64,000 nt of DNA from Callorhinchus milii (GCF_018977255.1 NW_024704754.1:13950001-14014000); one strand, 5' to 3'; positions 19,963 to 62,244 are shown, counted from the stretch's first letter. Notes: generated from the letters alone by a model not told the origin. Numbers and translations: made by a program.

Positions 19963-20290
19963 GTGGAGTCCTGTAGCTCAGTGGTTAGAGCACTCGCTTT
20001 GCAAGTGAGAGACTTGAGTTGAATTCCAGGCAGAGGGCGAAACCTTGGGCAAGTTTCCTTACTCCACACAGAGCCTAATAATAATCCCTCCAAAACCAAA
20101 ACCAATAATAAATTGGTCATTTTCAATCTACGACTGTTTGTGGGACATTGCTGTGCGCAATTGGCTGCCGCGTTCGCCCACAAATATACAGTCAATTCAC
20201 TTTACAGTGTGTTCTGTGAAGCGCTTTGGGACGTCCTCCCGACGTGAAAAGCGCTATATCAAATGCAAGGATTATTATTATTATTATTAT
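19963..20290 (+). mobile_element. Full-length tRNA-Ala(TGC)-headed SINE with Deu-like core and L2-type tail (young subfamily)
   Basis: A-box TAGCTCAGTGG, anticodon arm CTCGC-TTTGCAA-GTGAG, B-box GTTGAATTCC, core gactgtttgtgggacattgctgtgcgcaattggctg, stem-loop tail and (TTA)n. Confidence 0.88.
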
Positions 20291-21111: not shown

Positions 21112-21348
21112 CTGAGCTGAGTTAATGTGCGAGAAGACAATGAATGGCCAGTGTCTCAGTCCACAGATGTAGGAGTTTACAGAGCAGTTCCTGCTGAACA
21201 AATGCAGCCCAGTTTCAATACTGTGTGTGTATGTGTGTGTGTGTGTGCGGACAGTGGTTCGTTGTCGATGGCTCATTGTGCAGGTATCAATGTGTCTGAT
21301 TGTTCTCTGCTCCTCTCTCCACGTTCTCTCCAGGCTGTGATCCACACA
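21112..21348 (+). promoter_or_regulatory. Putative proximal promoter/5'UTR of gene 1
   Basis: Directly upstream of the ATG exon and shared nearly base for base with 61790-62024. Contains an Ets-like CAGTTCCTG, an E-box CAGATG and a (TG)n tract. Function is inferred. Confidence 0.4.
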
Positions 21349-21400
21349 ATGAGTGCCTCTCACTGCATGCTGGCACTGCTGCTCGCGTGTCTCATCCAGG
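21349..21400 (+). CDS. Siglec-like gene 1, signal-peptide exon (MSASHCMLALLLACLIQ-G)
   Basis: ATG at 21349 with A at -3, hydrophobic leader, and phase-1 donor G|gtaagg at 21400/21401. It joins in frame to the V-set exon. A strong acceptor (...ttctctccag, 21333) lies just upstream. Confidence 0.8.
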
Positions 21401-21627
21401 GTAAGGCTGTTTCACCCTTTAACACTATTATCTCTCGGCTTTAACTCAGGCATCTGATGTTTTTTAAGCATTGACTGAGTGTACGGATGTGTTCTATGGT
21501 TCACTGAAGTTGTTAATTACCTGGCAATTGACTAGAATTTTAGATACAGCTCCTCCGATGGCTCAGTAGGTTTATTCAGTGAGGATCTGAATTCTATAAA
21601 CAGAGAAGGTCATGGTTCCCTGGTCAG

Positions 21628-21945
21628 TCAGGGCGTTTTGGACCTGAGCTGGGAGTTGGGGTCAGGAGGGGTGGAGTAGTGGAGGGGCAGGGTGTGGGGT
21701 GGTGGGAGTGGGAGGGTGGCCAAAGGCACAGTTGAAGAGGAAGGTCTTTAGATGGGACTTGAAGGAAGCAAGAGAGGGAGTGAGGAGGAGGGATTACAGG
21801 ATAGAGTTCCAGAATGTGGGGGCAGAGATGCTGAATGCTCGACCACCATTGATGGGCCTGGAAGCACGTGGGACCTGAAGCAGGCCGGAGTCTGCCGAGC
21901 GGAGGGAGCGGACAGGCTGATGTGGGGTTAGGAGTTTGGAGAATC
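21628..21945 (-). mobile_element. L2 3' fragment in intron 1
   Basis: Reverse complement matches the L2 3' region of 4599-5258. Confidence 0.7.
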
Positions 21946-23750
21946 ACACATGAAGATTAGCCACTTCAGCTTGATTTCTTGATAATTACATTTTCAGGAG
22001 AGAAAATATACATATTATACTGACATGTACATTAGTTTAATTTATTTTATCTTTAATAGGAAATAATTCACTTTTACGAGAATATTTTAGAATGTAAGTG
22101 GCTTTTATACCGTAAATGTTCTAAGTTTTGTTTCAATCTCATTGCCAATTCTCTGATGCTCTCAAACAGAGCTACAACTGCGAAGACTGTTTCAGGGCAA
22201 CCTTGTTACCACGTTATAAGTGCAGCACCAAAAATGCTGATTTGGGTTGTCAGGTCACCACTGAATATCACTTCCTGCAGCTGCGTGTTCATGGTATGTG
22301 TAAGAAGCATTCCTGCTGCCACTTCCTTTGTGTATTCATACATGCACAGAATTCAGGAAGTGATGTTAGTGGCATATTTCCTGTACATTCTGGCATATAG
22401 ATAGTGACCTGAAGTTGTACATTTTTAGTGCAGGAAGCATCACAGTCAGCTTGGAAGCCTAAAGTTTCTGCTCACTATAAGGCCATAGGACATCAATGCT
22501 ATAAGTGACGGCAACGCTATATCCAGGGTATTAGGACTTGGCGGCAATGTATTTTGATGAGCTTCTTATCTAAATGAAGCATCAGTTCAAATAAGGAAAA
22601 AAAAACTAAGTGCATACAACTGAATATTGTTAACTGACTCTGAAAAGACTGGGCATGATTGTAGCTGTGCAGCATGTTCTCTAGGACCTCCCTACCCAAA
22701 AGAGCTTTGATTTGCAGACTTCAGCTTGTAGTCTAGGCTGACATTCCAGTGCAGTATTATTGAGTAATGTTAGAGTTGTTTTTCCTTCAGATGTGATGTT
22801 ATTGAGCTCCCATCTGTCTGCTCATGTTAAAGATCCTCTGACAGTGTTTGAAAAGAAATTGGAGCAGGTGCTGGTGTCCTCGTCAACAATCCTCCAGCTC
22901 AATCGATTATTCACCTCATTGTTGTTGCGGCTCGGCATTGGGCTCTGCCACTGTTAAGCGCTCTGAGATGCCGTCCCTATAAAGGGCGCTTTATAACTGC
23001 AAGTTGTTGTTGTGCAACCCCTGTTTGTGCTCAAAACTGCTGCTGTATTTCTCCACAGAATTTCTCACCACACTTGACAATAATTACTTTGAGTCTTTTG
23101 ACATGTAAGGTATTATAAACATGTAAGTTATTTTTATCTTTCTATGGATATCTTTCCAACCGTGTTTGGATTATTTTAGAGCTGCCTGGCTTTGTCCAGA
23201 TCATAAGACCTTGTTGCATTTTTACATGTTTAATCCCAGGGAGACTTCCCCCAAAAGGATTTTATCAACTTGAAAACAATGACTGGGACCCAGAACCTTC
23301 AACCAAACGAGCCATTAATGTTCCATCAAATGCAAAAAAGGAATAATAAGAATCCTTGTATTTGCTATAGCACCTATAATTCTGAAACACCTCAAAGTAC
23401 TTCACAGGTAATTGTTGACATGTGTGGTGACTGTGTTCGTAGGTAAATGTGGAAACAAATGTCCCACAAATAAAAATGAAATGATTAAAAACAGAAGTCA
23501 CTGGGAACCCTTAGCAGGTCAGGTAGCATCTACAGAGAGAGGATATTTTGAGCTCATCGTCTCCTGTCCTCCACCTAATTATTTCCTGTGTCTTTCTTTC
23601 CCTGCCCCCTTCTCCGTTTGTCCTTATAAACTGCTCCCTTCCAACATCCCCCAGTTCTGATGAAAGGTCACCGACCTGAAACGTTAACTCACTTTTCTCT
23701 TTCCATAGATGCAATAACAGCCACTGATGTATGTGTCTCTCCTCTTGCAG

Positions 23751-24113
23751 GGTTAGTCTGCCAGTGGTCTGTCTGGGTTGATACTTCTGCGTCTGCTTGG
23801 GAAGGCGAAACTGTGCTTTTGAACTGCTCTTTTGAGTACCCGGAAACAGTCCGAGATACCCAAGCAATAACTGCCAGGTGGCTGAAGAACTCTCCTTTCC
23901 CCAATAACAATCAGGCTGCCGAAATATACAACAGCAGGAATACCAGGAGGCTCTCGCCTGACATAACATTGGTGGGGGATCTGTCTGAGAAGAACTGTTC
24001 CCTTCAGATAACCAACATTAACAAAGTTGACAGTGGGATTTACTACTTCAGGTTTGAAATGGGACAGGGCAACAACTGGTCAGGAGATCATGGCGTCAGA
24101 GTCTCAGTTTACG
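23751..24113 (+). CDS. Siglec-like gene 1, V-set Ig domain exon (sialic-acid binding type)
   Basis: Acceptor cctcttgcag|, donor G|gtaatt, 363 nt, phase 1-1. Translation GLVCQWSVW...VLLNCSFEYP...WLK...GDLSEKNCSLQI...DSGIYYFRFE...NNWS. Cys in strands B and E with YYFR instead of YYC is the established Siglec V-set signature. Arg codon at 24050-24052. Confidence 0.93.
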
Positions 24114-24201
24114 GTAATTGCTTCTCCTTGTCTTTTCTTTTAACTTACTGTTTGTTAACTTATTGACTAAAGGCACCTACCTCCCTTTCCAAATTGTACA
24201 G

Positions 24202-24510
24202 GTCAACCAACGAAGCCAGAGATATCCATCCCGATGGAACTGCTTGAAAGCGATGAGATGAGCACTATAACCTGTTCCACCTCCAACGTTGATCAACGTG
24301 GCAGAGCCCGGCTCAGCTGGGAGGGCATCTCTGAATTGACAGAAGATTTGCCAGTCATTGAAGAGCAATTGTCTGGATCTACCTGGACAGTCATCAGTAA
24401 AGTCATGTTCATCCCATCATACCAGCACCATCAAAAACTTATCAGATGTGCTGTAGACTACATCCCCTTCCCTTATTCAGAAGACACGAATGTCACACTA
24501 CAAGTGAAGT
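24202..24510 (+). CDS. Siglec-like gene 1, Ig domain 2 exon (C2-type)
   Basis: Acceptor ttgtacag| after an 88-nt intron, donor T|gtaagt, 309 nt, phase 1-1. GQPTKPEISIP...ITCST...LSW...IPSYQHHQKLIRCAVDY...VTLQVK resembles domain 2 of the CD22/MAG/sialoadhesin type. Confidence 0.9.
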
Positions 24511-24607
24511 GTAAGTTACTGGCTGAGATTACCTTCAAATAACCCAAATTTGGCATTCACATATTGAGGCATCTTATTGCAGTATAACTGTAATAGAATG
24601 GATAATG

Positions 24608-24676
24608 GATAATAAATTTGTGTATGGATCCCTATACACTATTCATGTATAGAGACCCATACACAAATTTATGATC
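24608..24676. repeat. 26-bp near-perfect inverted repeat (hairpin) in intron 3
   Basis: Arms 24612-24637 and 24647-24672 with 2 mismatches and a 9-nt loop. Confidence 0.9.
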
Positions 24677-26777
24677 AGTCCCACAGATAAATGTTCTGCT
24701 GCAGTAGACTGGATAAAAGTAAGAAAAATGTTGCATGCTACATCTGATGCTGCTTGTTCATTTCAGGCTGGTTCATTGCAGGGTTATGTTGGCAATGCAA
24801 ACCCTTAATGAAAAGAGTTTCCTGGTAGCAAACTTACCCCAAACGATTTTTGGCATCTGATCTCCCGTTGCCTTCACAATAAATCATGAAGCAAGATGAC
24901 ACACGTGGAACAATAAACCAGAATCCGACAAGGTTTCTGAATGTGAAGACTATGGCTGCTCTAAAGAGCTACACTTTGTGTCTGCTCTGGCAATGGAATA
25001 TAAAGCAAGAATGAAATAAATAAGACCACCTGAAGGGAAAGCAAAGAGCTCAGCCCATGGTAGAGCATGATTTGGTGGTTGGGTAGTCAACTAACTTCTC
25101 CAAAACATCAGGGAAGAACTACCAAGGATGAAGAAATATGTGATACAAAATTTCAAAATGAAATAAATAAAATATTTTACACAAAGTTTAAAAGATGTCT
25201 GGAGCAAGTTATTAGGAAGCCCAGTGAAGCAAACACACTAAAAAGGATTCGAAAGGTGTTTGCTGAGAGAGGAGGGATTGAGGGATTTGGTCAGATGATA
25301 GAAAAGTGGGATTAAAACCTACCAAAAGGAAAAGCTCTGTAGTTTCCAATTACATTTCTCTTGTTACTAGTGGCACCAAAGTTTGTGGAACAATGCCATC
25401 CTAACTCACCAGGGAACAGGGTGATAAGAAGTGGGTTTGTGCTAGTAGTACACCCAATGAGTGCCCAGCTGTGGTATCATGTGGTGGCTGTCAGACATCT
25501 AAATTCCTCTCTGGGATTTCTGAGCCAATGGGTCAAAGCTGGCGAAGAAGATACCTGCTGCCCTCTAGTTTTGGGTCAAATGTATAGATAAGAGACAAGA
25601 AAAGGGGAAGAGAAAATAAAATGACCTAAAATGGGATGCAAAAGTGTTTTTATAGGGTGGTTGACTATGCGATCAAATAATTCCATGATTTTACCTCTCC
25701 ATAAACCAGTGAAAATAATCTATTGCTATTTATCCTGTCATTACCTTTAAAAGGCTAACGTGACCACATCCACCCCCCTCTCCTGAGCCGTAAATGAAAC
25801 CTCTCATCCCTAGTAATGTCTGTGGTCAAGCAGGTTTACGTGGACTGTGTAGAAAGAGGGCTTAATGTACCCGATGGCCTTTCCTCAATCCATGTGCCTT
25901 CTTATGTCTTTAGGTCACCTCCACCTTTCAACACTCTTTGATTGACTGTGCAAACAATGTGTCGCCCACACCATCGATTCCTGCAGAACACAAACCATTT
26001 ATCGCACGGAGGCATTAGCTCATCCCATTCTGTACTTTCAATACTGTCCCCAATCAACTCTTTCTGAGGCATTCCTATTTTCATAGAATAGAATTGTAGA
26101 ATTTTACAGCATGGTGCAGGCCATTCAACCAACCATTGTTTCTTCCGACTCTTTGAAAGAATTCATCATTCAATCTACTCCTCCATTCTTTACTCACACC
26201 ATTTAATTAGGTCAAAATTCCTTAATGAATAGCACTAGTATCAATTAAGATGTACCACACAATTTGGACAGTAAGTGAGAATGGTGATTTTTAAATAACG
26301 TTGATAATTCCTGTGAGAAGTAAGCATTTATTTTTTTAGGATACAGTACCTGTGTGCAACCTATGAAAGCAATAACAAAGCACATATTCCCTATTGAACA
26401 TCATAGCGCTGACCAGGAACAGTTATGCCTTTGATGAGTTATAGCTACATACTCAATTAGTCTGTGAACTTTCCAGAAATTAACACTCACAAACTGCAGG
26501 TTTCTAACGTTAACATAACGTTTTAAGATGTACCTCTTTGACCAAGATGTCATCTTTCCCCTCCCTACCTCTCGGCTCCCACCTCCAGCTTAGGTGCCCA
26601 TCCAGCATTGCCAAGTGCTTTGAGAGATCCTCCTGACATGAAAGTAAATTGTATTGTATTGACATTTTGGCTTCAGAAAAAGAAATGATGTCCATGTAAA
26701 CAGAATTTCAACCTTCAAATGTCTGGACAACTAACACATTGATGTGCTTTCTTTGGCGCCTATTTTTCTGCTTGCAG

Positions 26778-27056
26778 ATGCTCCAAAAAATACAATGGTT
26801 TTAGTGAATGGAACGCAGGAAGAAATCAAAGAAGGGAATTGTGTGACCCTGGCTTGTGCGAGTAACAGTCACCCTGAATCCAATTACACCTGGTACAAGA
26901 AAGATAGAATCACGGAGAACACAGAGATCTTAGATACCACAAGCAACGTCATGTTGTTCCATAAGATATCCAGGTTAGATTCCGGGTTCTACAGCTGCTT
27001 GGCAGCGAATTATCTGGGAAGCAACATCGCCACAGAAGTAGAAGTCGACGTTCAAT
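26778..27056 (+). CDS. Siglec-like gene 1, Ig domain 3 exon (C2-type)
   Basis: Acceptor tttctgcttgcag|, donor T|gtgagt, 279 nt, phase 1-1. (Y)APKNT...EGNCVTLAC.SNSHPESNYTWYK...DSGFYSCLAANYLG. Confidence 0.92.
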
Positions 27057-27491
27057 GTGAGTATTTGGCTTCCAATGTTACCAGTGAAGACATTCTGTAT
27101 TTTAAGGTTAATAAAAGGCACTTATAACGTATTACTCCACACAGCATGCACAGCCAAGAAATGGGCTATGCTTGCATGTAGACAGTTTCTGAATATGTAG
27201 GAATTAGGAGAAGATGAAAAAAATGAGAAATGTTCACACCGGAGAAGAGAAGGCTCAGAGGAGATGTTATTGAAGTATTCAAGATCCTAAAGGATTTAGA
27301 TAATAAACCTGGAGGAGTGGAGGTTCATGTGGAGTATAAACACCAGCATGGACTACCTGGGGTGGATGGCTTATTTCCATTCTGTACACTGATCTATGTA
27401 ATTTAATGCAATATGTTTGCCTTATTAACAAAAGTGGACTTGACATCAGAAAAAGAAACACAATTCAGATTGAATTATTTTACATAAAGTG

Positions 27492-27876
27492 AATAATAAT
27501 ATACTAATAATAATCTTACCATTTGATATAGCGGCTTATCGCATCGTCGAGACGTCTCAAAGTGTTTCACAGAATATACTGTAAAGTGAATTGACTGTAT
27601 ATTTTGTGGGCAAAATGCAGCAGCCAATTCCGCACAGCAGTATCCCACAAACATCTGTGGATTGAGTGACCAAATTATTATTGTTTTTTAAGGGATTATT
27701 ACCCCCGGAAAGCAATCTGCCAATCAACTAACAATCGTGTACCTACTTACTGCTAGGTAAACAGAAGCGTGTGGAGCAAGAAAACTTAGCCTAAGATTTT
27801 GCCTTACCCGGGAATTGAACCTGGGTCCTCTCGCCTGCGAGGCAAGTGCTCTAACCAATATGCTACAGGACTCTAC
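27492..27876 (-). mobile_element. tRNA-Ala(CGC)-headed SINE, older subfamily (intron 4)
   Basis: Reverse complement shows the tRNA head with a CGC anticodon, the Deu-like core and the tail. Confidence 0.82.
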
Positions 27877-28054
27877 AGGTGCTAGTTTGCAGCACATAGG
27901 ATGTTGGTCTGGTAACATGGAGTGGGACATGAAAATGATCCCAATGATTCTCAATTAACATTTAGGCAGAAGGAGGCCATCTGGCCCATTACACTCTGAG
28001 ACTCCACCTGGCGTGGAAGGCGCTATATAAGTGCAAGTTGTTGTTGTTGTTGTG

Positions 28055-28435
28055 TTGGCTCTTTAAAACAGCTACCCAACTAGTCCTACTCCAGTTCTTA
28101 CTCCAGAGCGCTGCAATTTTTTTCCTTTTTAGGTACCTATCCAATTCCCTTTTGAAAGCTGTTATCAAATTTGCTTCCTTCACCCTTTCAGGCAAGTTCA
28201 TTCCAGATCTTAACAACTCGCTGGGTAAAAAACTTCTCCTTGTTTCCCCTCTGGTTCTTTTGCCAATTATCTTAAATCTGTGTCTTCTGGTTACTGACCC
28301 ACCCACCAGAGGAAACAGTTTTTCCCGATCTACTCTATCAAAACCCCTCATAATTTGGAACACCTCTATTAAATCTATCCTCAACCTTCTCTGCTCTAAG
28401 GAGAATAATCCCAACCTCTCTTGTCTCTCCATATA
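28055..28435 (-). mobile_element. CR1 3' end (intron 4)
   Basis: LGLFSLEQRRLRIDLIEVFQIMRGFDRVDREKLFP...FKRELDRYL. Confidence 0.85.
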
Positions 28436-28666
28436 ACGGATTACATAATAGATTGTGTAGCAACTTGAAGAGGAAATTAGATAATTATTTGACAAAAGAA
28501 ACAATTGAGCATTCTGAAAGTTATAATGCCTGGTTATTTTTATGTTTTGCTTTATTTTGGGGTCAGAAGGACCATAATGCCTTTTCCAGTCCTTTATACT
28601 CCTAAATTCCAAAGGTTACCAGACCTCTGCTGTTGTTTCCTCTGTGAATGGAAAAGCCCAGTTGCA

Positions 28667-28732
28667 TCCCTGATTCTCAACTGACATTTAAGCACCTCAG
28701 GATGATTAAATGTCAGTTGAGAATCACAGGGA
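28667..28732. repeat. Perfect 21-bp inverted repeat (hairpin)
   Basis: tgattctcaactgacatttaa (28671-28691) and its exact reverse complement (28706-28726), with a 14-nt loop. Confidence 0.9.
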
Positions 28733-28929
28733 TAATTCCTCACCTTCCATTTCATGTCACCATCCCACTACTCTGTGTCCTGCAAGCTAGATTGCTCTCT
28801 GTTGATACACAACTGCCATAGCACTATACAAAGCATTGCTCTGTTGCAATCTGATGTGCATGTTCTCCCACACAATATAGTTCATCCCCTTGACAGTATA
28901 TCTATCTACACTTCTGCAAACATTTTTTG

Positions 28930-30540
28930 CTCCCGCCCCCACCAGGTCACCTGCTGCGCATTCCAAGTCTCCATCCTTGGCCCCTCCTACTCCTCATTTA
29001 CATGCTTCCTCTCAGTGATGTAATCCGCAGACATCAGTCAATTCCATCTGTATACAGATGACACCCAAATCTACTTCTCTTCCTCCAGCCGTAACCCCAG
29101 GTCCACCAATGTTGGGTCCTTTTGCTTGTCAGACATCAAGGTCTGGATAAGCATCACATTTCTGCAGCTGAATGTTGACAAGATCAAAGCCATCCTTCTT
29201 GGCTCCTGTCAATGTCTTCTCATCTGTGACTCCAGCCTCCTGAACCTCCCCTGCCTATCCCTTAGACTCACTGAACCTATGCGCAACCCAGTGTCAGGTT
29301 CAATCCTCAGCTTTCCTTCCTTCTCCACATCCGATCCCTGACTAAGACTGTATTCCTCCACCTCAGTCACATTGCCCACCTCCAACTGTATACCTCACAC
29401 CCAATGCAGCCAAAGCCCTTCTCCATGTATTGTGGGGATTTTGAAGTCGATCCGTTTGGGGATGGGGAGCCAATAGAACCTGGCCAGAAAATGGTGAGAT
29501 GTGGGTACGGAGTTTGGTCCGGGTCAGTATGCGGGTGGCAGAGTTCTGAATGAGCTGGATCTTGTGAATGGTGGAGCTGGAGAGACCGGCGAGGAGTGCA
29601 TTGGAGTAATCCAAGCGGGAGGTGACAAACCCATGCACAAGAGTTTCGGCTGCATTTGGGGTAAGGTACGGTCGGAGGCAGGCAATGTGGCCGAGGTGGA
29701 AGAAGGCAGTCCTAATCAGGGACCGGTTGTGGGGGAGAAAGGACAGCTAGGGGTTGAACCAGATGCCTAGGTTGCGCACTGGTTTGGTGAGTCTGAGGGA
29801 GAGCCCAGGGAGTTGAGGAGTTTAGATCCGCAGGAGCAAAGACGTAAGGAATATGGCTTTCGTCTAGTCCATATTCAGCTGCAGAAAGTTTACGCTCATC
29901 CAGGCCTTGAGGTCTGCCAGACAAGCTGATAGAACATTGGTGGGCATGGAGTTGGTACTAGAGGAGGCAAAGTAGATTTGTGTGTCATCGCACACACGTG
30001 GAAGTTTACCCATGTCTGCGGATGACATCACCAAGAGGGAGCATATAGATGAGGAAAAGAAGGGGGCCAAGAATGGATCCCTGGGATACCCCCAAGTGAC
30101 CGGGAGGGGGACGGGAGGAGAAACCATTTGTTGAGATGAAATGGAGGCGGTTGATTAAGGAGGACTTGAATCGTGTGAGTGTGATCCCACTAAGGTAGAT
30201 GATGGAAGAGAGTCGATGGAGGAGGATGGCATGGTTGACTGTGTCGAATGTGGCAGAGAAATCCAGGAGGACGAGGAGGCAGAGGGAGCCCTGGTCACAG
30301 ATAGAGAGAATACCATTTGTGACTTTGACAAGCGCTGTCTCTGTGCTGTGGGCAGTCGGGGCGAAAACCAGACTGCAGGGGCTCGAGGAGGGAGTGGAGG
30401 GAGAGGTGTGACCGAAGTTGACCTGCAACAATGCATTCCAAGATTTTGGCAAGGAAGGGTAGGTTGGAGATGGGATGGTAGTGGGAGACCTTTTCACAAA
30501 CCTTTCTCTACAACCAAATGAATTGATTTTCACAATGGTA
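28930..30540. mobile_element. Two L2 RT fragments tail-to-tail (+28930-29425, -29430-30540)
   Basis: [11 protein letters not shown]...LLDFSATFDTVNH...GVSQGSILGPLLFLIYMLPLG on the minus strand, and a diverged + copy of the overlapping region. Confidence 0.8.
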
Positions 30541-33500
30541 ACCAACAGCAAAACCTATCTTTAAATTGGAATGAGATCACTGTGATTATTGCAGAAAATA
30601 AATACTCGGGCTATAGCAGTACAAATTGCAGTGTGCGAGAAAGTGGTCTGAAACGCTGTACACTGTCCAACGCCTTGGGACATCCTCAAGACGTGAAAAG
30701 CACTATACAAATGTAATCTTGTTATCGTTGTTGTTACCTACACCAAATTTCCAGCAGTAACAGCCAGGAACAGTAAATAATTGATTAGAAATGAGGAGTA
30801 TTAATATTCACAAGGGGCAGTTGTGGTTTCAGTTGAAGTTGAAGCCTGTGGGTGCAAAGAAGACAGAGTGGTAAACTGTTATCGTTTGTCAGCGGTACTA
30901 CCCTGTGAATTTGATACCCATGTGACATGTATACTTGGGTTAATATGCCAATCAATTGGGTCACATTCATCATATATTCCTCTCTGCTTTAGGTAGTCAT
31001 TTCAGAAAGATTGTGTTTTTACTAGTTGAACAAATGGCTCTGCCTAAAGTCTGTGCAGTTTAATACCAGACCGGTTTTATAGCGGAATCCTGCTAACCAC
31101 AGGCCTGGAACACAACTTGCGCAATTATGCACTGAAGTTGTCCTGTTGTCAGTGAGCCCTGAAACATGTTCACACACAATTTGTCTTTCCCATCGGTAAC
31201 ATACTATATTTATATTTCTACTCAATATGCATACAATGAATAGATTGAGTTGGACCGTGCAGAAATTACAGGAACATATTAGCTGTATCCTTTGGTAAGA
31301 AAGGTTTCTTTCTCTTGCTGTCATTACAAGTTGCAGCTTCACATTTTGTTTTAAATTACCACTCTTATCAGTTTATATATTGATCACAGAAAGCCCTGCT
31401 CTATTGCTGACGGCCACTTATTAGTAACAACATCAGTATGATGCTTCAGGTATTTTTCGTCAGTTTAGCTAGCAGTAAGTAGGAACCCGGTTGTTAGTCG
31501 ATTGGTAGGTCGCTTTCTGGGGGGTAATCCTTCCCCCCAAAATAATTATTATTTTGTCAATCACTCTATGACTGTTTGTGGGATACTGCTGTGTGCAATT
31601 GACTGCTACGTTTCATCCCACAATACAGTCACTCCACTTTACAGTATATTTTGTGAAGCGCTTTGAGATGTATCGAAGACATAAGGCCTATATCAAATGC
31701 AAAGATTATTATTCATAAAATCCAATTCAAAACTGCGCTACTCATATCCTCACCTGGACAGAATTCCATAACCCCATCACCCCAGTAATGCCCGACTCCA
31801 CTGGCTCCCTACTGCAGAACGGATCAATTTCAAGATCTTCACATTCACATGAAATCACTTCATGCCCTGGTACCCCCTACCTCTCCAACTTGCTTACACC
31901 CCAATTTATGCTTAGCAATGACCCACAAACAGCCATGGAGTGAATGACCAATTTTACTGGGAGAATTGTTGGCCAGGACACCAAGAGAAACTCTTCTCTT
32001 TTCGAATGGTGCTGTGGGATCTTTAATGTCCGCCTGAACAAGCAGATGTGACCTTGATTTATCATCTCATCTGAAGGGAAGCACCTCATACAGTGTAGAA
32101 CATTGTAGTGTCAACTTGGCTATGTCAGTTTAAAGTCCCGAAGTGGGGATTGAACCCACAACCTTCCAACCCACAGAGCCAGACACAATGTTTAGCCCCA
32201 GTATCTTTGCCCCTCTATGTTCTGCCATTGAGCCAGGGTGGCTGGTCTGTCATCAACGGTGCTCTGAAGTCCTTCAAGAAGCAGACTAGTAAGCCCACCA
32301 CAGAGGGTTGACTTGATTCCAACATTCAGTTGCATGTCATCTTTGACATCTTTCAGCTCCAAATGCCCTGTTTACTTTCCCCCCGACCCCACCTCCCCAG
32401 AGGAGACTCATCATTTGGTCATTTATAAAGATATTTGAGATTTGTGCCCTCACGAGGTGGATAGCAGATATACTGCGACTTCCTGCAAGTTGTTAGACAC
32501 AGGAATTTATAAACTTCTTCATTCACATATAAAGTTCTTCTGTAAACTATACACTTACTACCATGCATCTGTAACCGTTGCCTGACCATTACAAAATTCT
32601 TTGCATAATTCCTGCAGTGAATTGTAATTTCAGCTTTTAATAGTAGACCATTTATTTCTACAAAAACACTGGACTTCAAGTCAGTGGGATTTGTTTCCAT
32701 TGCCTATCGTTTCAGCTAATTTCTATTTTTATTCATTTGAACTTGCACCAAACCATAAAGATGAAAACAGGAATGAGAAGCTCAGACTATATTTCTTCCC
32801 TTGGTGAATATCTAGACCACTTATGTCAGCTGGTTATATGACTGATTTTATCCACTTCCCAACTGAAGTTACTGGATAGTAATCTAGATCTATTATTATA
32901 CATAAAAATAATCCTTGCATGTGATACAGTGCAATGTTGAAATGTCTCAAAGCACTTCATAGGATATAATGTAAAGTGATGTGACTGTGGATTTTCTATC
33001 TTCTTCGCCTCTCCACCTCCCCACCTACCCCAGTGACGGTCAAGCCATTCATCCTGAATGAATTAATTTAGAAATCAGAATGATTTGGGGGAAAATAGAA
33101 GAAAATTCTTCCCACAGAGGGTGGTTGGAATGTGGAATTTGTTGTTGAGGCAGAGTCCATAGATTCTTTCAAAAGAGAATTAGATAGATGCTTGAAGAGG
33201 AGGAATATTAAAAGGGCAAGGGTACGATTCTATGATTTCCCTAAAAATACTGAAGTTGCAATTGAAAGAGAAAGAGGTTTTAAGCATAAGCACTCAGCCA
33301 TTTACCTTCACTCTGAAGATTAACTGCAACTTCACAAGTAGGAAAGATCAGAGAGAAGCGCTGGTAACACCCTGTGAAGTTACTAAGATCAGGAAGATTA
33401 AGAGAAGGGAGTTCCACTTAGTGTCGTGGCCAAAATCCCCCAGAAAAAAACTCACTCATTCATGGCTGTTTGTAGCACACTACTGTCTGCAAATTGGCCT

Positions 33501-35908
33501 TTGTGTTTGCGCATAAAATAAACAGTTACTCCACTTTACAGTGTATCCTGTGAAACACTTTGAGGCATCTTAATCTGATAACAACAACAACTTGCATTTA
33601 TACAGTCTCCCTCACGCAGGGTAGCGTCCCAGAGCGCTTGACAAAGACGGAGCACAATGCCGAACCAGGGGAGGGGGCAGGTGACCATAGCCACGGTCAA
33701 AGAGGAAGCAGGCGACCTGAAGATGGGGAAGGAGGGGGCAAACCAGAGAGATGGAGATGAGGCACTATGTATCAAATGAAAAGATTGTTATTACTATATT
33801 ATTAAGATAGATTTATATTAAAAAAAATAAAAACTTTTCGTATTGCACCTTTCATGTTGGGTTTACTGTGAAGTGGAGTGACTGTATTTTCTGTGCAAGC
33901 ACAGCAGCCAATTTGCACACAACAGTGTCCCATAAAGAGTGGAGTGTCACACTATGTGAGTTCAAAACGTGTGGCTTCTGACTGAAGAGGCGAGAGTGAG
34001 CTAGTCTGATACACACAGCCTGTGATATTGGTAAAATTTCACATAATTGTCACATGGAATCTGTTATGAATTGTTGCTTATTTCCATCCTTTTCCAAAGA
34101 ATGGGTGTGGAACTGAACTCTGTGCTTCCCCCGACTGTAACACGATGGTTGTCTGAGGATCGCTTTGCTGCCTAAACTCAGTCAGGTTCCTATGAATCAG
34201 ACAAGAGACTCCAGCATGGAAAAACAGTGTCCAATGCAGTTTGGGAATGCACTGCATTATTAAAGGTGCCGTCCTTCGGATGAGACATTAAACCAAATTC
34301 CCATCTGCCTCGTTAGGTGACCGGTGAAGATCCCATGGCACTGTTCAAAAAGAAAAGGGAGTTCTCCCAGCGTCCAGGCAACAATCCCCCAAATAAAAGA
34401 AAATGGTCACTTGTTTCATAGCTATTTGTGGAACATTGCTTTGTGCAAATTGGCTGCTGTGTTCCCCTACAAATACAGTCATTACACTTCACAATAAAAT
34501 CACGTGAAGTGCTTTGAGATATCTCAACATAATAAAGCACTTTGTCAAATGCAAGGATTATGTTTTATTAATAATAATAATGAAGCCGCTCTGCTCATTC
34601 AGTGGGATATGCGTGCCCAGGAATGCCAATCAGAATGGTATCTTCAGGGGCCTGTGAGAGTGAAGGTGGACAGATAGAGTATTATATGCTCATGCGAAGA
34701 GAATATGTACCAGGATTGGCAATCAGAGAGGCATGCCATGGAGAATCTGATTCACTCTATCTGAAGCCTCCTCAGGGAGAAAGGCAGTACCTTCTGTAGA
34801 CTAAATAAAGAGTTGAACATTCTTTGTTGATAATAATAGTCCTTGCATTTGATATAGCGCCTCATCATGTCCTTGAGACATCTCAAAGCGCTTCACAGAA
34901 TATATTCTAAAGTAGACTGACTGTGTTTTTTGTGATGCTGTCTGGCATAAGAGGTGCTATACAAGTTGTTGTTGTTGTTGTCAAAATGTGGTCTGTTTAT
35001 AACAAGAAATCCTGCAAAGAAACCAGCAAAGAAAATCCAGTTATTTTTTAGTGATCAGAACATGATTAACCCCAATATCAAGCCTCCTCCACACCCAAAT
35101 CACTCCTCAAAAAAACAGATTGGTACCTTCAGGAGACAGCTCTGGAGATGCTTCATCCCAATTTGACAATAAGGTGATAAATCAGACCTCCTTAACCTGA
35201 GGCTAATGGGATCCTGCCTGCTCTTTGGACCATAATATCACTGTTATAGATTACCAAAACAACATAACAATTCTTGCATTTGATATAGCGCCTTATTATG
35301 TCATTGAGACGTTTGAAAGTGTTCACAAGATATACTGTAAAGGATGTAACTGTGCAAACGTGCCCACAAATGTGACTGATGCCTTGTGGCTGTTTGTGGA
35401 CAGCTTTGTGTTGCTATAGCTGATACTTGCAAGGTGCTGGGTACTGCAAATCTGCAAGTTGTTCTATTCTATAAGCTAGTTCTCTTCAACCTTAACAAGA
35501 AATGTCACATGGGGGATGTTCTAGATACACCATGTGTCAGCCTTAGTTGGTAGCACTGTTGCTTCTGGGCTAGAAGACTGTGTTCAAGCTCCACGTCAGG
35601 ACTTTGAGCCCCTAGTCCAGACTGACATCTTGTGCAACACAGTGGGTGGCTAGGGCTAGAAGGGGCTCAGCTCCCCTCTTCCCCCCCCCACCCCGTCCCA
35701 GCCAAAAAATCTATCGACAGTCACTTATTGAAGGGGAGCTGGGAGAGGAAAGCCCTTAACCCTGAGGAGGACCACAGCCAGTTCTCTGAGCAGCCCCAAC
35801 CAGTGCACTCATGGGTCCTCTTTCCCCTCTCCCTAGTAATCGACAGTGCCCACCTACGTCTGGCTGCTCATCAAATATCAAATGCAATGTTTATCATTAT
35901 ATAGAAAT

Positions 35909-36260
35909 GTGGAGTCCTGCAGCTCAGTGGTTAGAGCATTCGCCTCGCAAGCGAGAGAGCTGGGTTTGATTCCCTGCACGGCAAAATGTTGGGCAAGTTT
36001 CCTTACTCTTTCCTTATGCCTCTGTTAACCTAGCAGAAAGTAGGAACCCGGTTGTTAGTGGATTGGCGGATTGCTTTTCCGGGGTTAATAAGTCCTTCAA
36101 AAAAATATAATAAATTGGTCACTTAATCCATGACTGTTTGTGGGACACTGCTGTACGCAACTGGCTGCCGTGTTTCATCCACGAAACATACAGTCAATTC
36201 ACTTTAGAATATATTCTGTGAAAGACACTATATCAAATGCAAGTATTATTATTATTATAT
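35909..36260 (+). mobile_element. tRNA-Ala(CGC)-headed SINE (intron 4)
   Basis: gtggagtcctgcagctcagtggttagagcattcgcctcgcaagcgag head, followed by core and tail. Confidence 0.82.
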
Positions 36261-36645
36261 TAGAAGACAAAGGATGTAAATCCAGAATACATTCAGATAT
36301 GCTAAGGCAGCAGGACAAGGTTCAGGATACCAGGAAATATTTTTTCACGCAGAGAAATCAACAGTGGTAACTAAGAAGGGAAGTAGAGGCCATAACAGTG
36401 ATTCTTTTAAGAAAGGGCTTGATACTGCAATGGTATGGAGAGAAAGATGAGATCAAATAAGCTGAAGAGCCTGCTTCATCCAAATCTTTTCTAATAACAT
36501 GAAACAAAAGAATTCTAGCTGCAGATATTGTTAAAATATACAATTATATCTGTATAGCGCCTTTCACATCGAGAGGACATCCTAAGGCGCTGGTACAAGT
36601 ATTATTTCTGAAGCTGTAGTAACCAAATTTAATTTGCTTTTGTAG

Positions 36646-36900
36646 ACAAACCCGATAAGGTCACCATCACCCAAGACTTGATGTATACGTGTGTGGCTGA
36701 GGCCAGCCCTCCTGCGAAGATCACATGGAAGATCAGTGACCCCAGTATAAATCTCACTAATCCTGCGGTCAGTATAATGCAGGACGTCAATGGCACTCAT
36801 TCAAGTAGCACACTCAATCTGGATACAACGGCCAACTTTTGTGTATCCTGCCTTGCTCAGAACAAACATGGGGTCACAGTCTCAGAGAAATGTCCACCAG
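36646..36900 (+). CDS. Siglec-like gene 1, membrane-proximal Ig domain 4 exon
   Basis: Acceptor ttgcttttgtag|, donor G|gtaagt, 255 nt, phase 1-1. (Y)KPDKV...YTCVAEASPPAKITW...SSSTLNL...VSCLAQNKHG...KCPP resembles the short proximal domain of MAG and CD33-related Siglecs. Confidence 0.88.
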
Positions 36901-38009
36901 GTAAGTGTAAATGATATTCTTCCAGTTACTAAAGAGTTACCTACAGCTAGAATTATTTTTTTCAATTGATGATTGTCACCAGGTTCAGGGAATTTCTGTT
37001 TCCAGGTTTTTATACAGTTTTTATAAACAAACCCAAGTTTTAGCTATGCAACAAACATTAATATTATATTAATAAAGCTGCTTAGATACCCAAGGACCCA
37101 AATTTTACCTAATCTAAGCCTTCGGACAATTTTTTCTTATTGAAAATTTGAGTTTGTGCAGAGATCTGAACGTATTTTAAAATTCAGCAACAACAACAAC
37201 AAATTGCATTTGTGCAGTGCCTTCCACATCAGGAGGATATTCTGAGGCGCTGGACAGTCAGGGATCTGAATTCAGTCTTAATTCGGAATTTGGTTCTTTT
37301 TAAGGACCGTGGAAAACCGACTTTCAAATTAATACTGAATTTACGAATGTTCCACAATTTTCCACTGTCTTAAAATTTAAGTCAAATGATCTACAGGCTA
37401 AAACTAGGTAGAATTTCATGTCTCTGCGTCTCAAATTCCTCAATAAGGCCTTAGCCTTGAAAGACTATTGTCTTAAGATTTAAGATAATTTAGAACTTTG
37501 TTAAATTTAGTGTGAATTTTGAAGCCAGTTTTCTAAATTCTGCTAAATTAAGACTGAATTGAAAAATTTTACAACAATCTTAAATTTAAATCATTGACCT
37601 TAAGCATAAGACCAGGAGAAATTTCAAGTGTCTGGAGTAGTTTTGTTATTGCAATATTAACAAAATATAACGGACATTTAAACAATTTTAAGTAGAATTT
37701 GGGTGGTTTAAATAATCTACTTCTATTTAATTCCGTATTTCCTCTCTTTGTAGAGTTATTTTGATTTAAATTGTTCTTTCTAACACAAGTTCTTTCTAAC
37801 TGATAATCCCTATTCTAATGTTCTATAACTTTCTAGTTATAACTATAAAGTTTATAACTTTATAGCACTGATGAGAATGGGGGACTAGGAATTTCATGTA
37901 GAAAGTTTCTCCCACCGCTGGATATCCCACTTCAGTCTGTTGCTCAACTTCCCTAGCTCTAGGGAGCAATTAATGCTGCTGGACCTCTTGCAAACCACTT
38001 TCCTCATGG

Positions 38010-38240
38010 TGAGACCTGGGTTCGATTCCTGGCAGGGCGAAACCTTGGGCAAGTTTCCTTACTCCACACACCTAATAATAATCCCTCAAAAAAAAAAATA
38101 ATAAATTGGTCACTTCAATCCACGACTGTTTGTGGGACACTGCTGTGCACAATTGGCTGCTGCGTTTCGCCCACATAATATGCAGTCAATTCACTTTACA
38201 GTATATTCAGTGAAGTGCTTTGAGACGTCCAGAAAACGAT
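38010..38240 (+). mobile_element. 5'-truncated SINE of the same family (intron 5)
   Basis: Starts at the T-arm gagacctgggttcgattcc and continues through the core and part of the tail. Confidence 0.78.
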
Positions 38241-38365
38241 AAGGTCACCACTGATATCACTTCCTGCGTGCGGCACATGAGCAGAAAGTGTTGCTGATGT
38301 CACTTTGGGATGGAATAGAGCACATCCACATTACCCAGGAAGTGACATTATTGTCACCCCCACAG

Positions 38366-38840
38366 ATGGTTGTCAACTCTGGTTGGACATACTGAGTTAC
38401 CCTGAAACAAATTAACTGTGGAGCGACGCTAAAATTATCCATTTTGAGAAAAGGGTTCTGTTCCTTTGAAAGTGCAAAAGGCATGTGAGCCCGGGTTATG
38501 TTTGGTCGCCATCATAAAGTGAAACAGCAATGACTTGACGGTAGTTAGATAACATAAGTCGCAGCACCAGTGGACCAATAAGATGGTTGAGAGAGGGCAA
38601 GAGTGCATTGGCTTGACATTTCAGATGGATTGTAGAGTCTCCAGGTGGGGATGAAACAAATGAGAAGTTGATAACACGATAAATCTGATTCACCAAATGC
38701 CAATAAATATTACATTTTGAGAATTCCCTATGACGGATCTCATGGATTAGTTGCAATATTGTCCGGGCGATTAATATTTAATACCTGGAGATGCCCGGAC
38801 AATCCTGGAGTCTAAGCAACCCCAACCCTACTGCACTGTC
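38366..38840. mobile_element. Probable non-autonomous DNA transposon (MITE) in intron 5
   Basis: Degenerate terminal inverted ends (atggttgtcaac... / ...gcaacccc(aaccc)ta) and a subterminal 11-bp inverted repeat at 38758-38768 / 38793-38803. Confidence 0.45.
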
Positions 38841-39012
38841 CAGTAAATGCATGTGTGCCAAGTGCATTTACACTGTAGAGAGATGAAGCTTCTTCACTCC
38901 CACCAACATGGAATCCTCCTCCCCACGCTATCTGGCTGCGAAAAAATTATCTCCTGCACCTTATCAGAACTCACCACGTGAAGAAATTATTCTGATCTCA
39001 TTAATTTCCAAG

Positions 39013-39186
39013 CTGTAACCTGCTGTATTGATGCTTGCGATAGCTCTGGCCATAATGGCACCATGTTGTCACCAGGCTCCTATACCAGGATGCTGCTGCT
39101 GATTGTGGGCCTCATTGCTGGGACTACCGTAGCCATCATAATCTTTGTTATCGTGTCATGGAAACGGAAGAAGCAAGTCATCGAAG
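39013..39186 (+). CDS. Siglec-like gene 1, stalk/transmembrane exon (acceptor at 39012 or 39075, both in frame)
   Basis: Uncharged hydrophobic run MLLLIVGLIAGTTVAIIIFVIVSW followed by the stop-transfer KRKK, and donor G|gtgagt at 39186/39187. Either acceptor keeps phase 1. Confidence 0.8.
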
Positions 39187-39813
39187 GTGAGTGCTCAGCT
39201 TTCTATCAGTTATTTCTTTTTTTAAAAAACTCTAATTCCCTTACAATTTCTCTACCTGTTTCATAGGTGGACATTAAAAATCACACAACACTATTGGAAA
39301 AGAAAAGGGAGTTTCTCCCGGCCAACATTAACCCAGATAAACTGGTCTATTCACCTTATGGCTGTTTGTGGGACTTTGCTGTGTGCAAAATATAATATAA
39401 TTTTGCAAGTAATTACTTGCAAAACACTGAGCTGTTTCGATGCAATTACGTTTTTCACTTTTCACTCATTTCCAGTCTCTGGTCTTATTTTCCTGGTTTA
39501 GTTTGAACGTGATCAGAAAGTGTTGGAAGGTGAAATGGTATCAATCATCTTTGAGAAGATAAACTCTTAATTCTAACCATTTTGCAGCAGATGCATTGCT
39601 GGAGCAAACAAATGAGTCACAAGAATCAATGACAATGCTTGACAGTAATTACTATCTGATATTTTGACCCAATAAAGTGCTATGAAAATAGATGTTCTTT
39701 CTTTCTTTACAGGAAAGATCATTGTGAATCTCTTATCCATCAGTGGATTTTGAAGTGATAAAAGAAATATTTTGAATTCAAATGATTAATTGGTTCCTTT
39801 TGTGTTGTCTCAG

Positions 39814-39875
39814 GAAGAGAATTGGAAAATGAGGCACAGCCAGTGATGTACACTGAAGTGCAAACAGCAAAAAAG
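39814..39875 (+). CDS. Siglec-like gene 1, cytoplasmic exon with ITIM (VMYTEV)
   Basis: Acceptor ttttgtgttgtctcag|, donor AAG|gttagt. Phase-1 splice from the TM exon gives GRELENEAQPVMYTEVQTAKK. VMYTEV fits the (I/V/L/S)xYxx(L/V) consensus. Confidence 0.72.
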
Positions 39876-39973
39876 GTTAGTAAAGGTCCTCCTAAGAATA
39901 AAGTTTTTCCTTCTGAATCCAGGGATCTTCAACAGGGAGGAGGGGGCAGGAGGTGATGGTGGGAAGTTTCTAG

Positions 39974-40343
39974 ATAATAATATTCCTTGCCTTTGATACA
40001 GCACCTTATCACATCTTCAAGACGTCTTAAAGCACTTCACGGAATATATTGTAAAGGGAATTGACTGTATATTTTGAGGGCGTAACGCAGCAGTCAATTG
40101 TGCACAGCAGTGTCCCTTAAACAGTCATGGATTGAGGAATCAAACTATTATTTTTTTAAGGAATTATTACTCCCGGTAAAGCGATCCACCAATTGACTAA
40201 CAACCAGGTTCCTACTTACTGTGAGGTAAACAGAGACGTGTGGAGTAAGGAAACTTGCCCAACATTTCACCCTGCCCGGGAATCAAACCCAGGTCTCTCG
40301 CTTGCGAGGCGAGTGCTCTAACCACTGAGCTCCAGGCCTCCAC
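39974..40343 (-). mobile_element. tRNA-Ala(CGC)-headed SINE downstream of the ITIM exon
   Basis: Full head, core and tail on the minus strand. Confidence 0.82.
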
Positions 40344-41939
40344 AAAGATGACAATGATGAGGTCGGCCTGTAATTTATGTAGCGCTCCTCACGCAGGGTA
40401 TCGCCCCAGAGCTCAGAGCACGAGGCCGAGCCGGGGGGGTGACATTAGGCACGGTCGAAGTGGAAGGTCTAGAACCGCCACCTGAAGATGGTGAGGAAAG
40501 GCGCAAGACGGAGGGATAGAGGAAAAGTGCTCCAGAGTTTCGGGGCGCAGTGACTGAAAGCCCATCAATTTTCAATCAGTCTGTTGCATTTTCACATGCT
40601 TTTCAGTTCACCACAGAAACTTACCGACAGAACTATTCCTGGTGTTTTTACCACATCTGCTTGCAGTGGGTTCACATTAAATGAGAAGTGGCATTTCATA
40701 TTGTACTGTTGTTTCTCAATGTTTCTAACCAGTGCGCTCCTAACAGGGTGCCCAGGGAGCTCCAGCCGAGGCCCATGGCAGGCGGGATAAGGAATTTGCC
40801 TACGCCAACTTGCAGCATGAGCCAAACGGCAAGCAGCAGGTGAAAGGGCAGAGCGAGCTAGTGGAGTTTGTGGGCACAGTGTGAGGATCTGCTGGGAGAC
40901 TGCAGTGCACGCCTCCCTCCACTCTGTCAAACTATACTTGAGAAGATTGAAAACGGATTAAAATGTAAACAAAGTGTATGCGGCTATCTCGGGGCAAACC
41001 CATTTGGGAACAAAACTTGGACTTTGTGCGGGAGAGGGAGGGAGGGAGGTAATCTGTATTTTATTTGCTTTCTATTCCATTGGAAAAATTATAAAATGTT
41101 TCTAAATCACAGTTTAGAATCTCCAAAATCTCATACGTGTATGTATCAAACATCTCACGGAGAAGTACATTTAGTCTTTGTAAGTGATCCTTCCAGAGAG
41201 TAACGTTTTGAAGAACAAAGTGTTAAAGCAGAGAATCATTGAAAGCTGTAAAACTAAGATAACATTGAATGAAATGGAAAACATGTGCCCTTTTTTGTCC
41301 TGTTTCTCATGCTGTTATATTGAAGGTGACACCAAGACTGCAATCTAACCAATCGAGTTTGTGCATTATCTAGGATTGAGTTTGTTTTGGGGCAGAAAGG
41401 CCTATTTATGTGCTGTAATATTTCTATGATTCCATAATTGGCACATACAAAAATTTGTCAAATTCCTCCCCTTTGATACCAAATCTGTTTTACTATTTAA
41501 AAAAAAACTCGGTGTTTCATGCTGAAATCAGCTACAGCCATTGATGGTTGGGCATCTATTGCCAATGTTATACAGACCTGAAACCTGTACAGTATGGGAC
41601 CGGGGGGTGGGGGGGAATGATTCTCTTTAATACCCGCAGACATGTGGGAGATTTGTGAGCTATCTGTGCAGAGCCTAATACAAGCATGTAAACATCCTGA
41701 GTTATACTCAATGTTTTATTCTCATTGGGTTTAGTAGTACAGCAATATCACAATGACCACATGAACATACTTATCTGTCACTGTATGTATCTCATCTAAA
41801 CTCACATTACCATCAGTGAGTACTATTTGCTCCTTTGTTGATCTATTTATCCCTCCTGACTTCCCTCGCTTTGAACTGTTGTACTGTGTTTCTACAAACT
41901 TCACCCATTTCCTGGAATATTTTTTCTATCTCTCCCTCT

Positions 41940-52926: not shown

Positions 52927-53116
52927 NNNNNNNNNNNNNNNNNNNNNNNNNNNNNNNNNNNNNNNNNNNNNNNNNNNNNNNNNNNNNNNNNNNNNNNNNN
53001 NNNNNNNNNNNNNNNNNNNNNNNNNNNNNNNNNNNNNNNNNNNNNNNNNNNNNNNNNNNNNNNNNNNNNNNNNNNNNNNNNNNNNNNNNNNNNNNNNNNN
53101 NNNNNNNNNNNNNNNN
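52927..53116. other. Assembly gap (190 N) inside a GA/G-rich tract
   Basis: Run of n flanked by (GA)n. Confidence 1.
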
Positions 53117-61789: not shown

Positions 61790-62024
61790 CTGAGCTGAGT
61801 TAATGTGCGAGAAGACAATGAATGGCCAGTGTCTCAGTCCACAGATGTAGGAGTTTACAGAGCAGTTCCTGCTGAACAAATGCAGCCCAGTTTCAATACT
61901 GTGTGTGTGTGTGTGTGTGTGTGCGGACAGTGGTTCGTTGTCGATGGCTCATTGTGCAGGTATCAATGTGTCTGATTGTTCTCTGCTCCTCTCTCCACGT
62001 TCTCTCCAGGCTGTGATCCACACA
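61790..62024 (+). promoter_or_regulatory. Putative proximal promoter/5'UTR of gene 2
   Basis: Copy of 21112-21348 that differs only within the (TG)n tract. Confidence 0.4.
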
Positions 62025-62076
62025 ATGAGTGTCTCTCACTGCATGCTGGCACTGCTGCTCGCGTGTCTCATCCAGG
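62025..62076 (+). CDS. Siglec-like paralog (gene 2), signal-peptide exon (MSVSHCMLALLLACLIQ-G); rest of gene beyond window
   Basis: Identical to 21349-21400 except one C>T (Ala3Val), with the same acceptor and the same gtaagg donor. No Ig exon is found in 62077-64000, which fits a first intron like the 2.35-kb one in gene 1. Confidence 0.7.
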
Positions 62077-62244
62077 GTAAGGCTGTTTCACCCTTTACCA
62101 CCATTATCTCTCTGCTTTAGATCAGTGGTAATCACTAACCATGTGCAAGAGCTTTTCCCAGGAACCCTCTGTCACCATGAAGTGATGGGCTTTGAGGCAG
62201 ATCCTGATTCCCATAGAGAGAGCTTCTGGGCAGGTGAGACATAG

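Follow-up and report, generated by a model that had tools for sequence, protein, structure and literature searches.

In a typical Siglec, domains 1 and 2 are joined by a disulfide between a cysteine of the GxCxxIPC motif in domain 1 and a cysteine of the xxNCPxx motif in domain 2. CD22 has seven immunoglobulin (Ig) domains and several immunoreceptor tyrosine-based inhibitory motifs (ITIMs), and Siglec-5 combines a V-set domain and three C2-type domains with an uncharged transmembrane segment, a proximal ITIM and a distal tyrosine motif, encoded on separate exons. According to the published view, fish have only Siglec-1, CD22, MAG and Siglec-15, without short CD33-type inhibitory Siglecs (PMC7226832). 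Here we describe a Siglec-like gene of the elephant shark, Callorhinchus milii, found in a stretch of 64,000 nucleotides (the window, to which all positions refer). By sequence and predicted fold, its product is a type I membrane receptor of the Siglec family. It is very probable, in our opinion, that the gene is the chimaera member of a cartilaginous-fish gene group encoding an inhibitory-type Siglec, sialic-acid binding and inhibitory signaling being the predicted part of this reading.

Directly observed are the structure of the gene, its family membership (from sequence and predicted fold), its conservation and its phylogenetic position. The gene is intact and consists of eight coding exons on the plus strand at 21349-40884 (scaffold MU249844.1 of GCA_018977255.1, positions 13,971,349-13,990,884), all with canonical AG/GT borders:

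21349..21400, plus strand: exon 1, start codon and signal peptide MSASHCMLALLLACLIQG, residues 1-18; GT donor; N-terminus of P0001; AlphaFold helix 3-19
23751..24113, plus strand: exon 2, V-set domain, residues 18-139; Pfam V-set and Ig_CD22, mouse MAG alignment
23751..24113, plus strand: landmarks of exon 2, W23xxW26, C43, NSPFP loop, C100, R118, N125, W127, S128
24202..24510, plus strand: exon 3, C2-set domain 2, residues 139-242, C163-C221, without the interdomain cysteine; Pfam C2-set_2 and alignment
26778..27056, plus strand: exon 4, Ig domain 3, residues 242-335, C268-C315; Pfam Ig_3 (6e-19), Ig_2, I-set
36646..36900, plus strand: exon 5, membrane-proximal Ig domain 4, residues 335-420, cysteines 350, 400, 403 and 417; tblastn 100% to P0001
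39076..39186, plus strand: exon 6, uncharged transmembrane helix, residues 425-448, and KRKK stop-transfer; AlphaFold helix 421-455
39814..39875, plus strand: exon 7, ITIM V-M-Y469-T-E-V
40747..40884, plus strand: exon 8, residues 478-522, EFAY496ANLQHE, stop codon TGA at 40882-40884; tblastn to P0001/P0002

Exons 1-6 end in phase 1, i.e., after the first codon base, as is usual in genes of the Ig superfamily, and the end of exon 7 coincides with a codon boundary. The coding sequence of 1569 nt translates into a protein identical to the 522-residue database protein P0001, named “myelin-associated glycoprotein-like [Callorhinchus milii]” by NCBI; P0006 is an alternative model of the same gene. 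A preliminary description of this DNA had recognized seven exons, all of which are present on the plus strand with AG/GT borders, and its two lengths of 477 and 498 codons over exons 1-7 are explained by two in-frame acceptors of the transmembrane exon, 39076 and 39013. The 39013 acceptor, which adds 21 codons, is unsupported, the 21-residue insert being found neither in P0001 nor in any elasmobranch counterpart. The gene model of the same description stops at 39875. This position is a splice donor, and the eighth exon, with its conserved FAYANL, had been overlooked. Readthrough of the donor (39876-39953) would yield a potential 503-residue product ending in ...VSKGPPKNKVFPSESRDLQQGGGGRR, without the YANL motif. 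Permissive tblastn searches (E up to 10) of the whole window with MAG, CD22-like proteins and proteins of a related cartilaginous-fish group (group B, see below) gave no sign of an additional Ig exon, either within intron 4 (9.6 kb) or in any other part of it. For this reason, the four-domain ectodomain is considered real and not the result of an exon missed in intron 4.

The second line of evidence is provided by the architecture and fold of the protein, in which a signal peptide and a V-set domain are followed by three C2/I-type Ig domains, a transmembrane helix without charge and a 74-residue tail. Its Pfam matches (V-set, 3e-15; Ig_CD22, 8e-13; C2-set_2, 4e-13; Ig_3, 6e-19) and its identity with the elasmobranch counterparts are far beyond what would be expected by chance. 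Ranked by sequence, the closest solved structures are mouse MAG (1e-36), human CD22 (1e-19) and Siglec-8 (8e-15), followed by CD33 and Siglec-5; for domains 1 and 2 alone, the order is MAG (2e-21), Siglec-5 (4e-13), CD33 (2e-11), sialoadhesin (1.5e-9), CD22 (4e-9) and Siglec-15 (1e-4). The AlphaFold model, computed from an alignment of 27 rows, comprises four β-sandwich domains, the transmembrane helix 421-455 and a disordered tail, with a mean predicted local distance difference test score (pLDDT) of 78.8, and Foldseek ranks MAG first for this model (1e-24), domains 1-3 of CD22 next (4e-19), and nectins after them. The V domain with three further Ig domains, the uncharged transmembrane segment and the ITIM of the preliminary description are supported. 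Its “MAG-like proximal domain”, however, is not specific: domain 4, which is modeled as β strands (pLDDT 79-94), when searched alone finds contactin-2 and other generic Ig domains as its best matches, and MAG is absent from the list. The domain count had been judged unusual by comparison with only four conserved Siglecs, and a V domain plus three C2 domains with an ITIM is the architecture of Siglec-5, a CD33-related Siglec, so that this arrangement is nothing new among Siglecs. In addition to the canonical cysteine pair, domain 4 contains C400 and, close to the membrane, C417 (EKCPP), both of which are kept in the counterparts; group B proteins likewise have a cysteine immediately before the transmembrane segment. 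The extra cysteines of domain 4 may form an additional intradomain bond or a covalent dimer.

The third line of evidence is the conservation of the gene in sharks and rays. A word-index search identified one counterpart in each of five elasmobranchs: proteins of 510-521 residues with 65-68% full-length identity in Stegostoma, Heptranchias, Narcine and Rhinoraja, and a truncated model in Pristis. Three full-length counterpart models have the same length and domain plan as the C. milii protein, and the other two are truncated or variant. The counterpart of Heptranchias perlo (L003/P0003) has a 24-residue N-terminal extension and a differing C-terminus without the ITIM and YANL; these odd termini are probably an annotation or splice variant, not a genuine difference. 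The NCBI names of the counterparts are inconsistent (MAG-like, CD22-like, PSG7). The presence of counterparts in five elasmobranchs indicates that the duplication founding the gene predates the chimaera-elasmobranch split. As regards the earlier suggestion of a lineage-specific expansion, the gene is not the product of a recent one. As for the novelty that had been seen in the gene, counterparts with the same architecture do exist and the gene is automatically annotated, but none of them is described in the searchable papers.

Sequences for trees of domains 1-3 were obtained from a HMMER scan of 1.84 billion cluster representatives, the names of which were looked up afterwards. Bit scores over these domains were 480-517 for the counterparts and 180-289 for group B, and no bony-vertebrate protein scored above 137. 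In the IQ-TREE phylogeny, the target group is monophyletic (support 100/99) and sister to group B, which is confined to cartilaginous fish and includes P0008, P0009, P0139, P0142, P0147, P0171 and P0290, automatically named Siglec-5/-10/-13/-14, CD22-like or sialoadhesin-like. The joint clade, likewise supported at 100/99, holds only cartilaginous-fish proteins. Bony-vertebrate MAG (100/99) and sialoadhesin (platypus, lizard, frog) fall outside this clade, as do tetrapod CD22 (including domains 1-3 of human CD22), human Siglec-5/CD33, and a shark “CD22-like” clade of proteins of about 1,230-1,280 residues. Judged by these sequence relationships, the gene is not an orthologue of MAG, CD22, sialoadhesin or CD33-type Siglecs.

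Group B shares with the target group, besides its sister position, 37-47% sequence identity, the loss of the interdomain cysteines, a homologous signal exon, the membrane-proximal domain and location on the same chromosome. Unlike the target group, its proteins are 565-843 residues long and contain extra repeated C2 domains, longer tails with YENx and several ITIMs, a histidine in place of the ITIM tyrosine, and an extra pair of cysteines in the V domain, and they have neither WxxW nor NSPFP. On the sequence evidence, then, the gene represents a single-copy, conserved group across cartilaginous fish with a more variable sister group.

The same data bear on the possibility that the gene is a short relative of CD22 (Siglec-2), i.e., a B-cell co-receptor-type inhibitory Siglec of the CD22 lineage. 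Pfam places Ig_CD22 on the first domain, CD22 ranks second among the structural matches, and both tails follow the same inhibitory logic; moreover, several counterparts are named “B-cell receptor CD22-like” by NCBI, the best tree places the target on the CD22/sialoadhesin side of a split supported at 99/97, and the group B tails combine CD22-like YENV and ITIM motifs. Nevertheless, we regard this possibility as very unlikely, given that domains 1-3 of human CD22 group with CD22-like proteins of turtle, newt and caecilian (100/97) and not with the target, that sharks have a distinct “CD22-like” clade of their own, that the sequence score of CD22 is far below that of MAG (1e-19 vs 1e-36), and that the interdomain cysteines are present in human CD22 but not in the target. 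The CD33-related Siglecs, Siglec-5 in particular, resemble the target in overall architecture and in forming a tandem cluster with paralogues of varied domain number. The 99/97 split separates the target from human Siglec-5 and CD33, both of which are placed on the side of MAG, although with two partial human sequences this is a weak test. Since CD33-related Siglecs are reportedly absent from fish (PMC7226832), any likeness to them would be convergent.

The fourth line of evidence concerns the residues of the sialic-acid site. In HMMER and MAFFT alignments, R118 (YYFRFE) aligns with R118 of MAG and with the arginine of Siglec-5, CD33, CD22 and sialoadhesin, and C43 (LLNCSF) and C100 (KNCSLQ) occupy the positions of the B-E cysteine pair of MAG. 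The positions of the site correspond to those of MAG as follows:

R118: R118 in MAG
N125: N125 in MAG
W127: Y127 in MAG
S128: T128 in MAG
F67: Y65 in MAG
W23-x-x-W26: the W22-x-x-W motif of MAG

W23 lies in QWSV and W127 in NNWS, the latter residue corresponding to the tryptophan of CD22. The MAG counterparts of the aligned residues are sialic-acid contacts, and W22 is a C-mannosylation site (PMC7226832). The essential arginine, the B-E cysteine pair and the tryptophans pointed out in the preliminary description thus do align with ligand-site residues of MAG. R118, N125, W127, S128, F67, the WxxW motif and the C43/C100 pair are retained in all five cartilaginous-fish counterparts. The V domain of group B has gained two cysteines (WLKxPC and YCFRFE), which could form a new bond.

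The features of the tail are likewise conserved. The transmembrane segment without charged residues is followed by VMY469TEV, which fits the ITIM consensus (S/I/V/L)xYxx(I/V/L). Four of the five elasmobranch counterparts carry VIYTEV together with EFAYANLQHE, and the Heptranchias model ends earlier on another C-terminus. The YxN core of the distal motif fits the consensus for the SH2 domain of Grb2. The tail ends in ...VEFVGTV, without a C-terminal motif of the TEYAEI type found in MAG, and the order of its motifs, PV(I/M)Y(T/S)xV and then YANL, resembles that of coelacanth and ray-finned-fish MAG tails (NPPVIYSSV ... MDYANL). In six group B proteins (P0008, P0009, P0139, P0147, P0171 and P0290), the homologue of the ITIM exon reads QPV(I/L/F/T)H(T/N)..., with histidine at the position of the ITIM tyrosine; the same six tails have other ITIMs and YENx/YDNx-type motifs farther downstream.

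These features suggest a mechanism in which the V domain would bind terminal sialic acid via R118, aided by N125, W127, S128 and W23. Src-family kinases would phosphorylate Y469 of the ITIM, which would then recruit SHP-1/SHP-2 and dampen signaling of the cell that expresses the receptor. Through the YxN motif at Y496, the tail may also engage SH2 domains of the Grb2 type and so add an adaptor.

Several observations weigh against this reading. The hallmark disulfide between domains 1 and 2 is absent, GETVLLNC and TSNVDQ, around residues 38 and 169, standing in place of GTCVSIPC and PDNCPE of MAG; these cysteines are replaced throughout group B as well and are present in MAG, sialoadhesin, CD22, Siglec-5 and CD33. 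The interdomain disulfide is treated here as a typical rather than a decisive feature of Siglecs. The position of Y65 in MAG is occupied by phenylalanine (F67), and an N-glycosylation sequon, N126-W-S, lies within the predicted ligand site, GNNWSG being kept in the counterparts; a glycan at N126 could hinder, mask or tune binding. FAYANL is neither a canonical ITIM nor an immunoreceptor tyrosine-based switch motif. The splicing of the eight exons is deduced from homology and the database model, and we only infer sialic-acid binding, inhibitory signaling and the expressing cell type. Finally, the evidence on the deep placement of the clade is divided: the best tree puts it on the CD22/sialoadhesin side of the 99/97 split, pairwise scores favor MAG, and a clade uniting MAG with the target and group B is not rejected by an approximately unbiased (AU) test (p = 0.129).

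The loss of the disulfide, the replacement at the Y65 position and the glycan sequon at the G-strand ligand site would all be compatible with an adhesion protein or receptor of the Ig superfamily that has lost sialic-acid binding, keeps the arginine by descent and recognizes a protein ligand; nectins and nectin-like proteins are strong fold matches too. In our view this is improbable, because all five species, from both sides of the chimaera-elasmobranch split, retain R118, N125, W127, S128 and W23, and the conservation of five such residues is hard to explain without selection on a sialic-acid site.

It should also be considered whether the gene is the MAG (Siglec-4) orthologue of cartilaginous fish, minus one Ig domain, with a role in myelin-axon adhesion rather than immune inhibition. 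MAG is the top solved structure by both sequence and fold, and the NCBI name of the gene is MAG-like. The two proteins share the arginine in YYFR, the B-E cysteine pair, N125 and T/S128, and the V domain has the MAG-specific WxxW and NSP[YF]P loop. The tail, with PV(I/M)YTEV and then YANL, follows the order of a proximal ITIM and YANL seen in fish and coelacanth MAG, and the AU test leaves room for a common clade. Fish MAG carries an ITIM and is reported in blood cells (PMC7226832); for this reason, an immune role and a neural role cannot be separated by sequence alone. MAG orthology is nonetheless unlikely. Bony-vertebrate MAGs form a clade of their own (100/99) from which the target is excluded, their identity with the target is about 27-28%, and the target is not the reciprocal best match of MAG: against sharks, gar and rat MAG score 209-210 bits with P0218 and 194-197 bits with P0196, compared with 127-134 bits for the target group. 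P0218, named “Schwann cell myelin protein-like”, has the MAG-type C-terminus (LHYACIDFS...TQYAEIKQE) that the target does not have, and in Heptranchias the MAG-like P0218/P0196 genes lie on a different contig from the target counterpart. The preference of MAG for P0218 and P0196, the tail of P0218 and the separate contig argue that the gene is not the MAG orthologue. Moreover, the target has four Ig domains instead of five, it has lost the interdomain disulfide that every aligned MAG has kept, and it is without the C-terminal (T/S)(E/D)Y(A/T)EI motif. The inhibitory-type Siglec of a separate cartilaginous-fish clade is therefore retained as the preferred reading.

The 5′ end of the gene is duplicated within the window. 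Blastn identified two copies of a 338-bp segment:

21112..21449, plus strand: copy 1, exon 1 flanked by 237 bp of upstream DNA (5′ untranslated region/core promoter, including a (TG)n run) and by the first 49 bp of intron 1
61790..62125, plus strand: copy 2, likely promoter and signal exon, ATG at 62025, MSVSHCMLALLLACLIQ, GT donor kept

The copies are 97.6% identical and end abruptly in unrelated flanking DNA, and the signal peptide of copy 2 differs from that of copy 1 by a single alanine-to-valine change. A haplotig or other assembly duplication was ruled out as the origin of copy 2, the match being limited to 338 bp with unrelated flanks. No Siglec-like sequence follows copy 2 up to position 64000 (tblastn). 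A word search with residues 1-140 among proteins of 287-913 residues retrieved only P0001, P0006 and four elasmobranch counterparts, and thus revealed the signal peptide in no other C. milii protein; it follows that the annotation does not assign this exon to the neighbor, that the neighbor falls beyond this size range, or that copy 2 is a lone exon. Copy 2 likely starts the next gene, the remaining exons of which would lie past the window.

The same tandem layout is found in Narcine, where a 759-residue multi-Ig gene lies 8.3 kb downstream of the counterpart on the same strand, and its exon 1 (MSISQCILALVTMCLVQ) is 75.5% identical in DNA to exon 1 of the counterpart over 94 bp. By analogy with this layout, a neighboring paralogue is likely in C. 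milii as well. The paralogue that the preliminary description had placed 40.7 kb downstream accordingly gains support from the promoter and signal-exon copy and from Narcine, but the rest of it is not visible in the window. In Heptranchias, P0003 and the group B protein P0290 share an identical signal peptide, MRTSHCTLALIAVCLIKG, and their genes lie on the same contig; a counterpart and a group B gene occupy the same chromosome-scale contig in Narcine, Pristis and Heptranchias. No other gene occurs within 10 kb of the counterpart at the Heptranchias and Stegostoma loci. We read these data as indicating a tandem duplication older than the chimaera-elasmobranch split, after which gene conversion, a step that we infer, most likely homogenized the promoter and signal exon. 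The homogenized 5′ ends of the C. milii neighbors recall the gene conversion of the Siglec-5/-14 pair, with the difference that the tract in C. milii covers the promoter and signal exon only, without the V exon.

Beyond fragments of long interspersed nuclear elements (LINEs) and the heads of tRNA-derived short interspersed nuclear elements (SINEs), no other genes or RNAs were found in the window. These comprise:

19971-20290: Rfam tRNA hit
35913-35984: Rfam tRNA hit
40276-40331, minus strand: Rfam tRNA hit
51071-51392: Rfam tRNA hit
57539-57860: Rfam tRNA hit
10846-11124, plus strand: LINE remnant, broken reverse-transcriptase open reading frame (Pfam RVT_1)
15051-15515, plus strand: LINE remnant, as above
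30006-30551, minus strand: LINE remnant, as above

The tRNA hits are the heads of repeats of about 290 bp, the copies at 20001, 51101 and 57573 being 95-96% identical; they are probably tRNA-derived SINEs and not tRNA genes. One of the LINE remnants is located in intron 4 of the Siglec gene. An intergenic run of 190 N bases at 52927-53116 is an assembly gap or a mask.

Nothing relevant to cartilaginous-fish Siglecs was found among the searchable papers. The gene itself is already known from automated annotation under inconsistent names, its architecture occurs in Siglec-5, and it is not a new kind of molecule. What is new, as far as the searchable literature shows, is a conserved Siglec clade found only in cartilaginous fish, without the interdomain disulfide and with a tandem pair having a homogenized 5′ end. 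More tentatively, and we consider this a possibility rather than a likelihood, cartilaginous fish may have independently evolved a tandem cluster of short inhibitory Siglecs, in which one member is conserved and its neighbors vary in domain number, with a role like that of the mammalian CD33-related Siglecs, co-expression of neighbors through gene conversion of the promoter and signal exon, and clade-wide loss of the interdomain disulfide. The idea of co-expression is prompted by the nearly identical tract in C. milii and by the identical signal peptides of P0003 and P0290.

The published view of fish Siglecs rests on bony fish, and to it must be added an old Siglec clade that belongs to chimaeras, sharks and rays. 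This bears on the early diversification of Siglecs in jawed vertebrates, on the question of an ancestral origin of ITIM-bearing MAG-like receptors, and on the extent to which Siglecs require the interdomain disulfide. In our opinion, it is a modest but useful point for understanding the evolution of the family.

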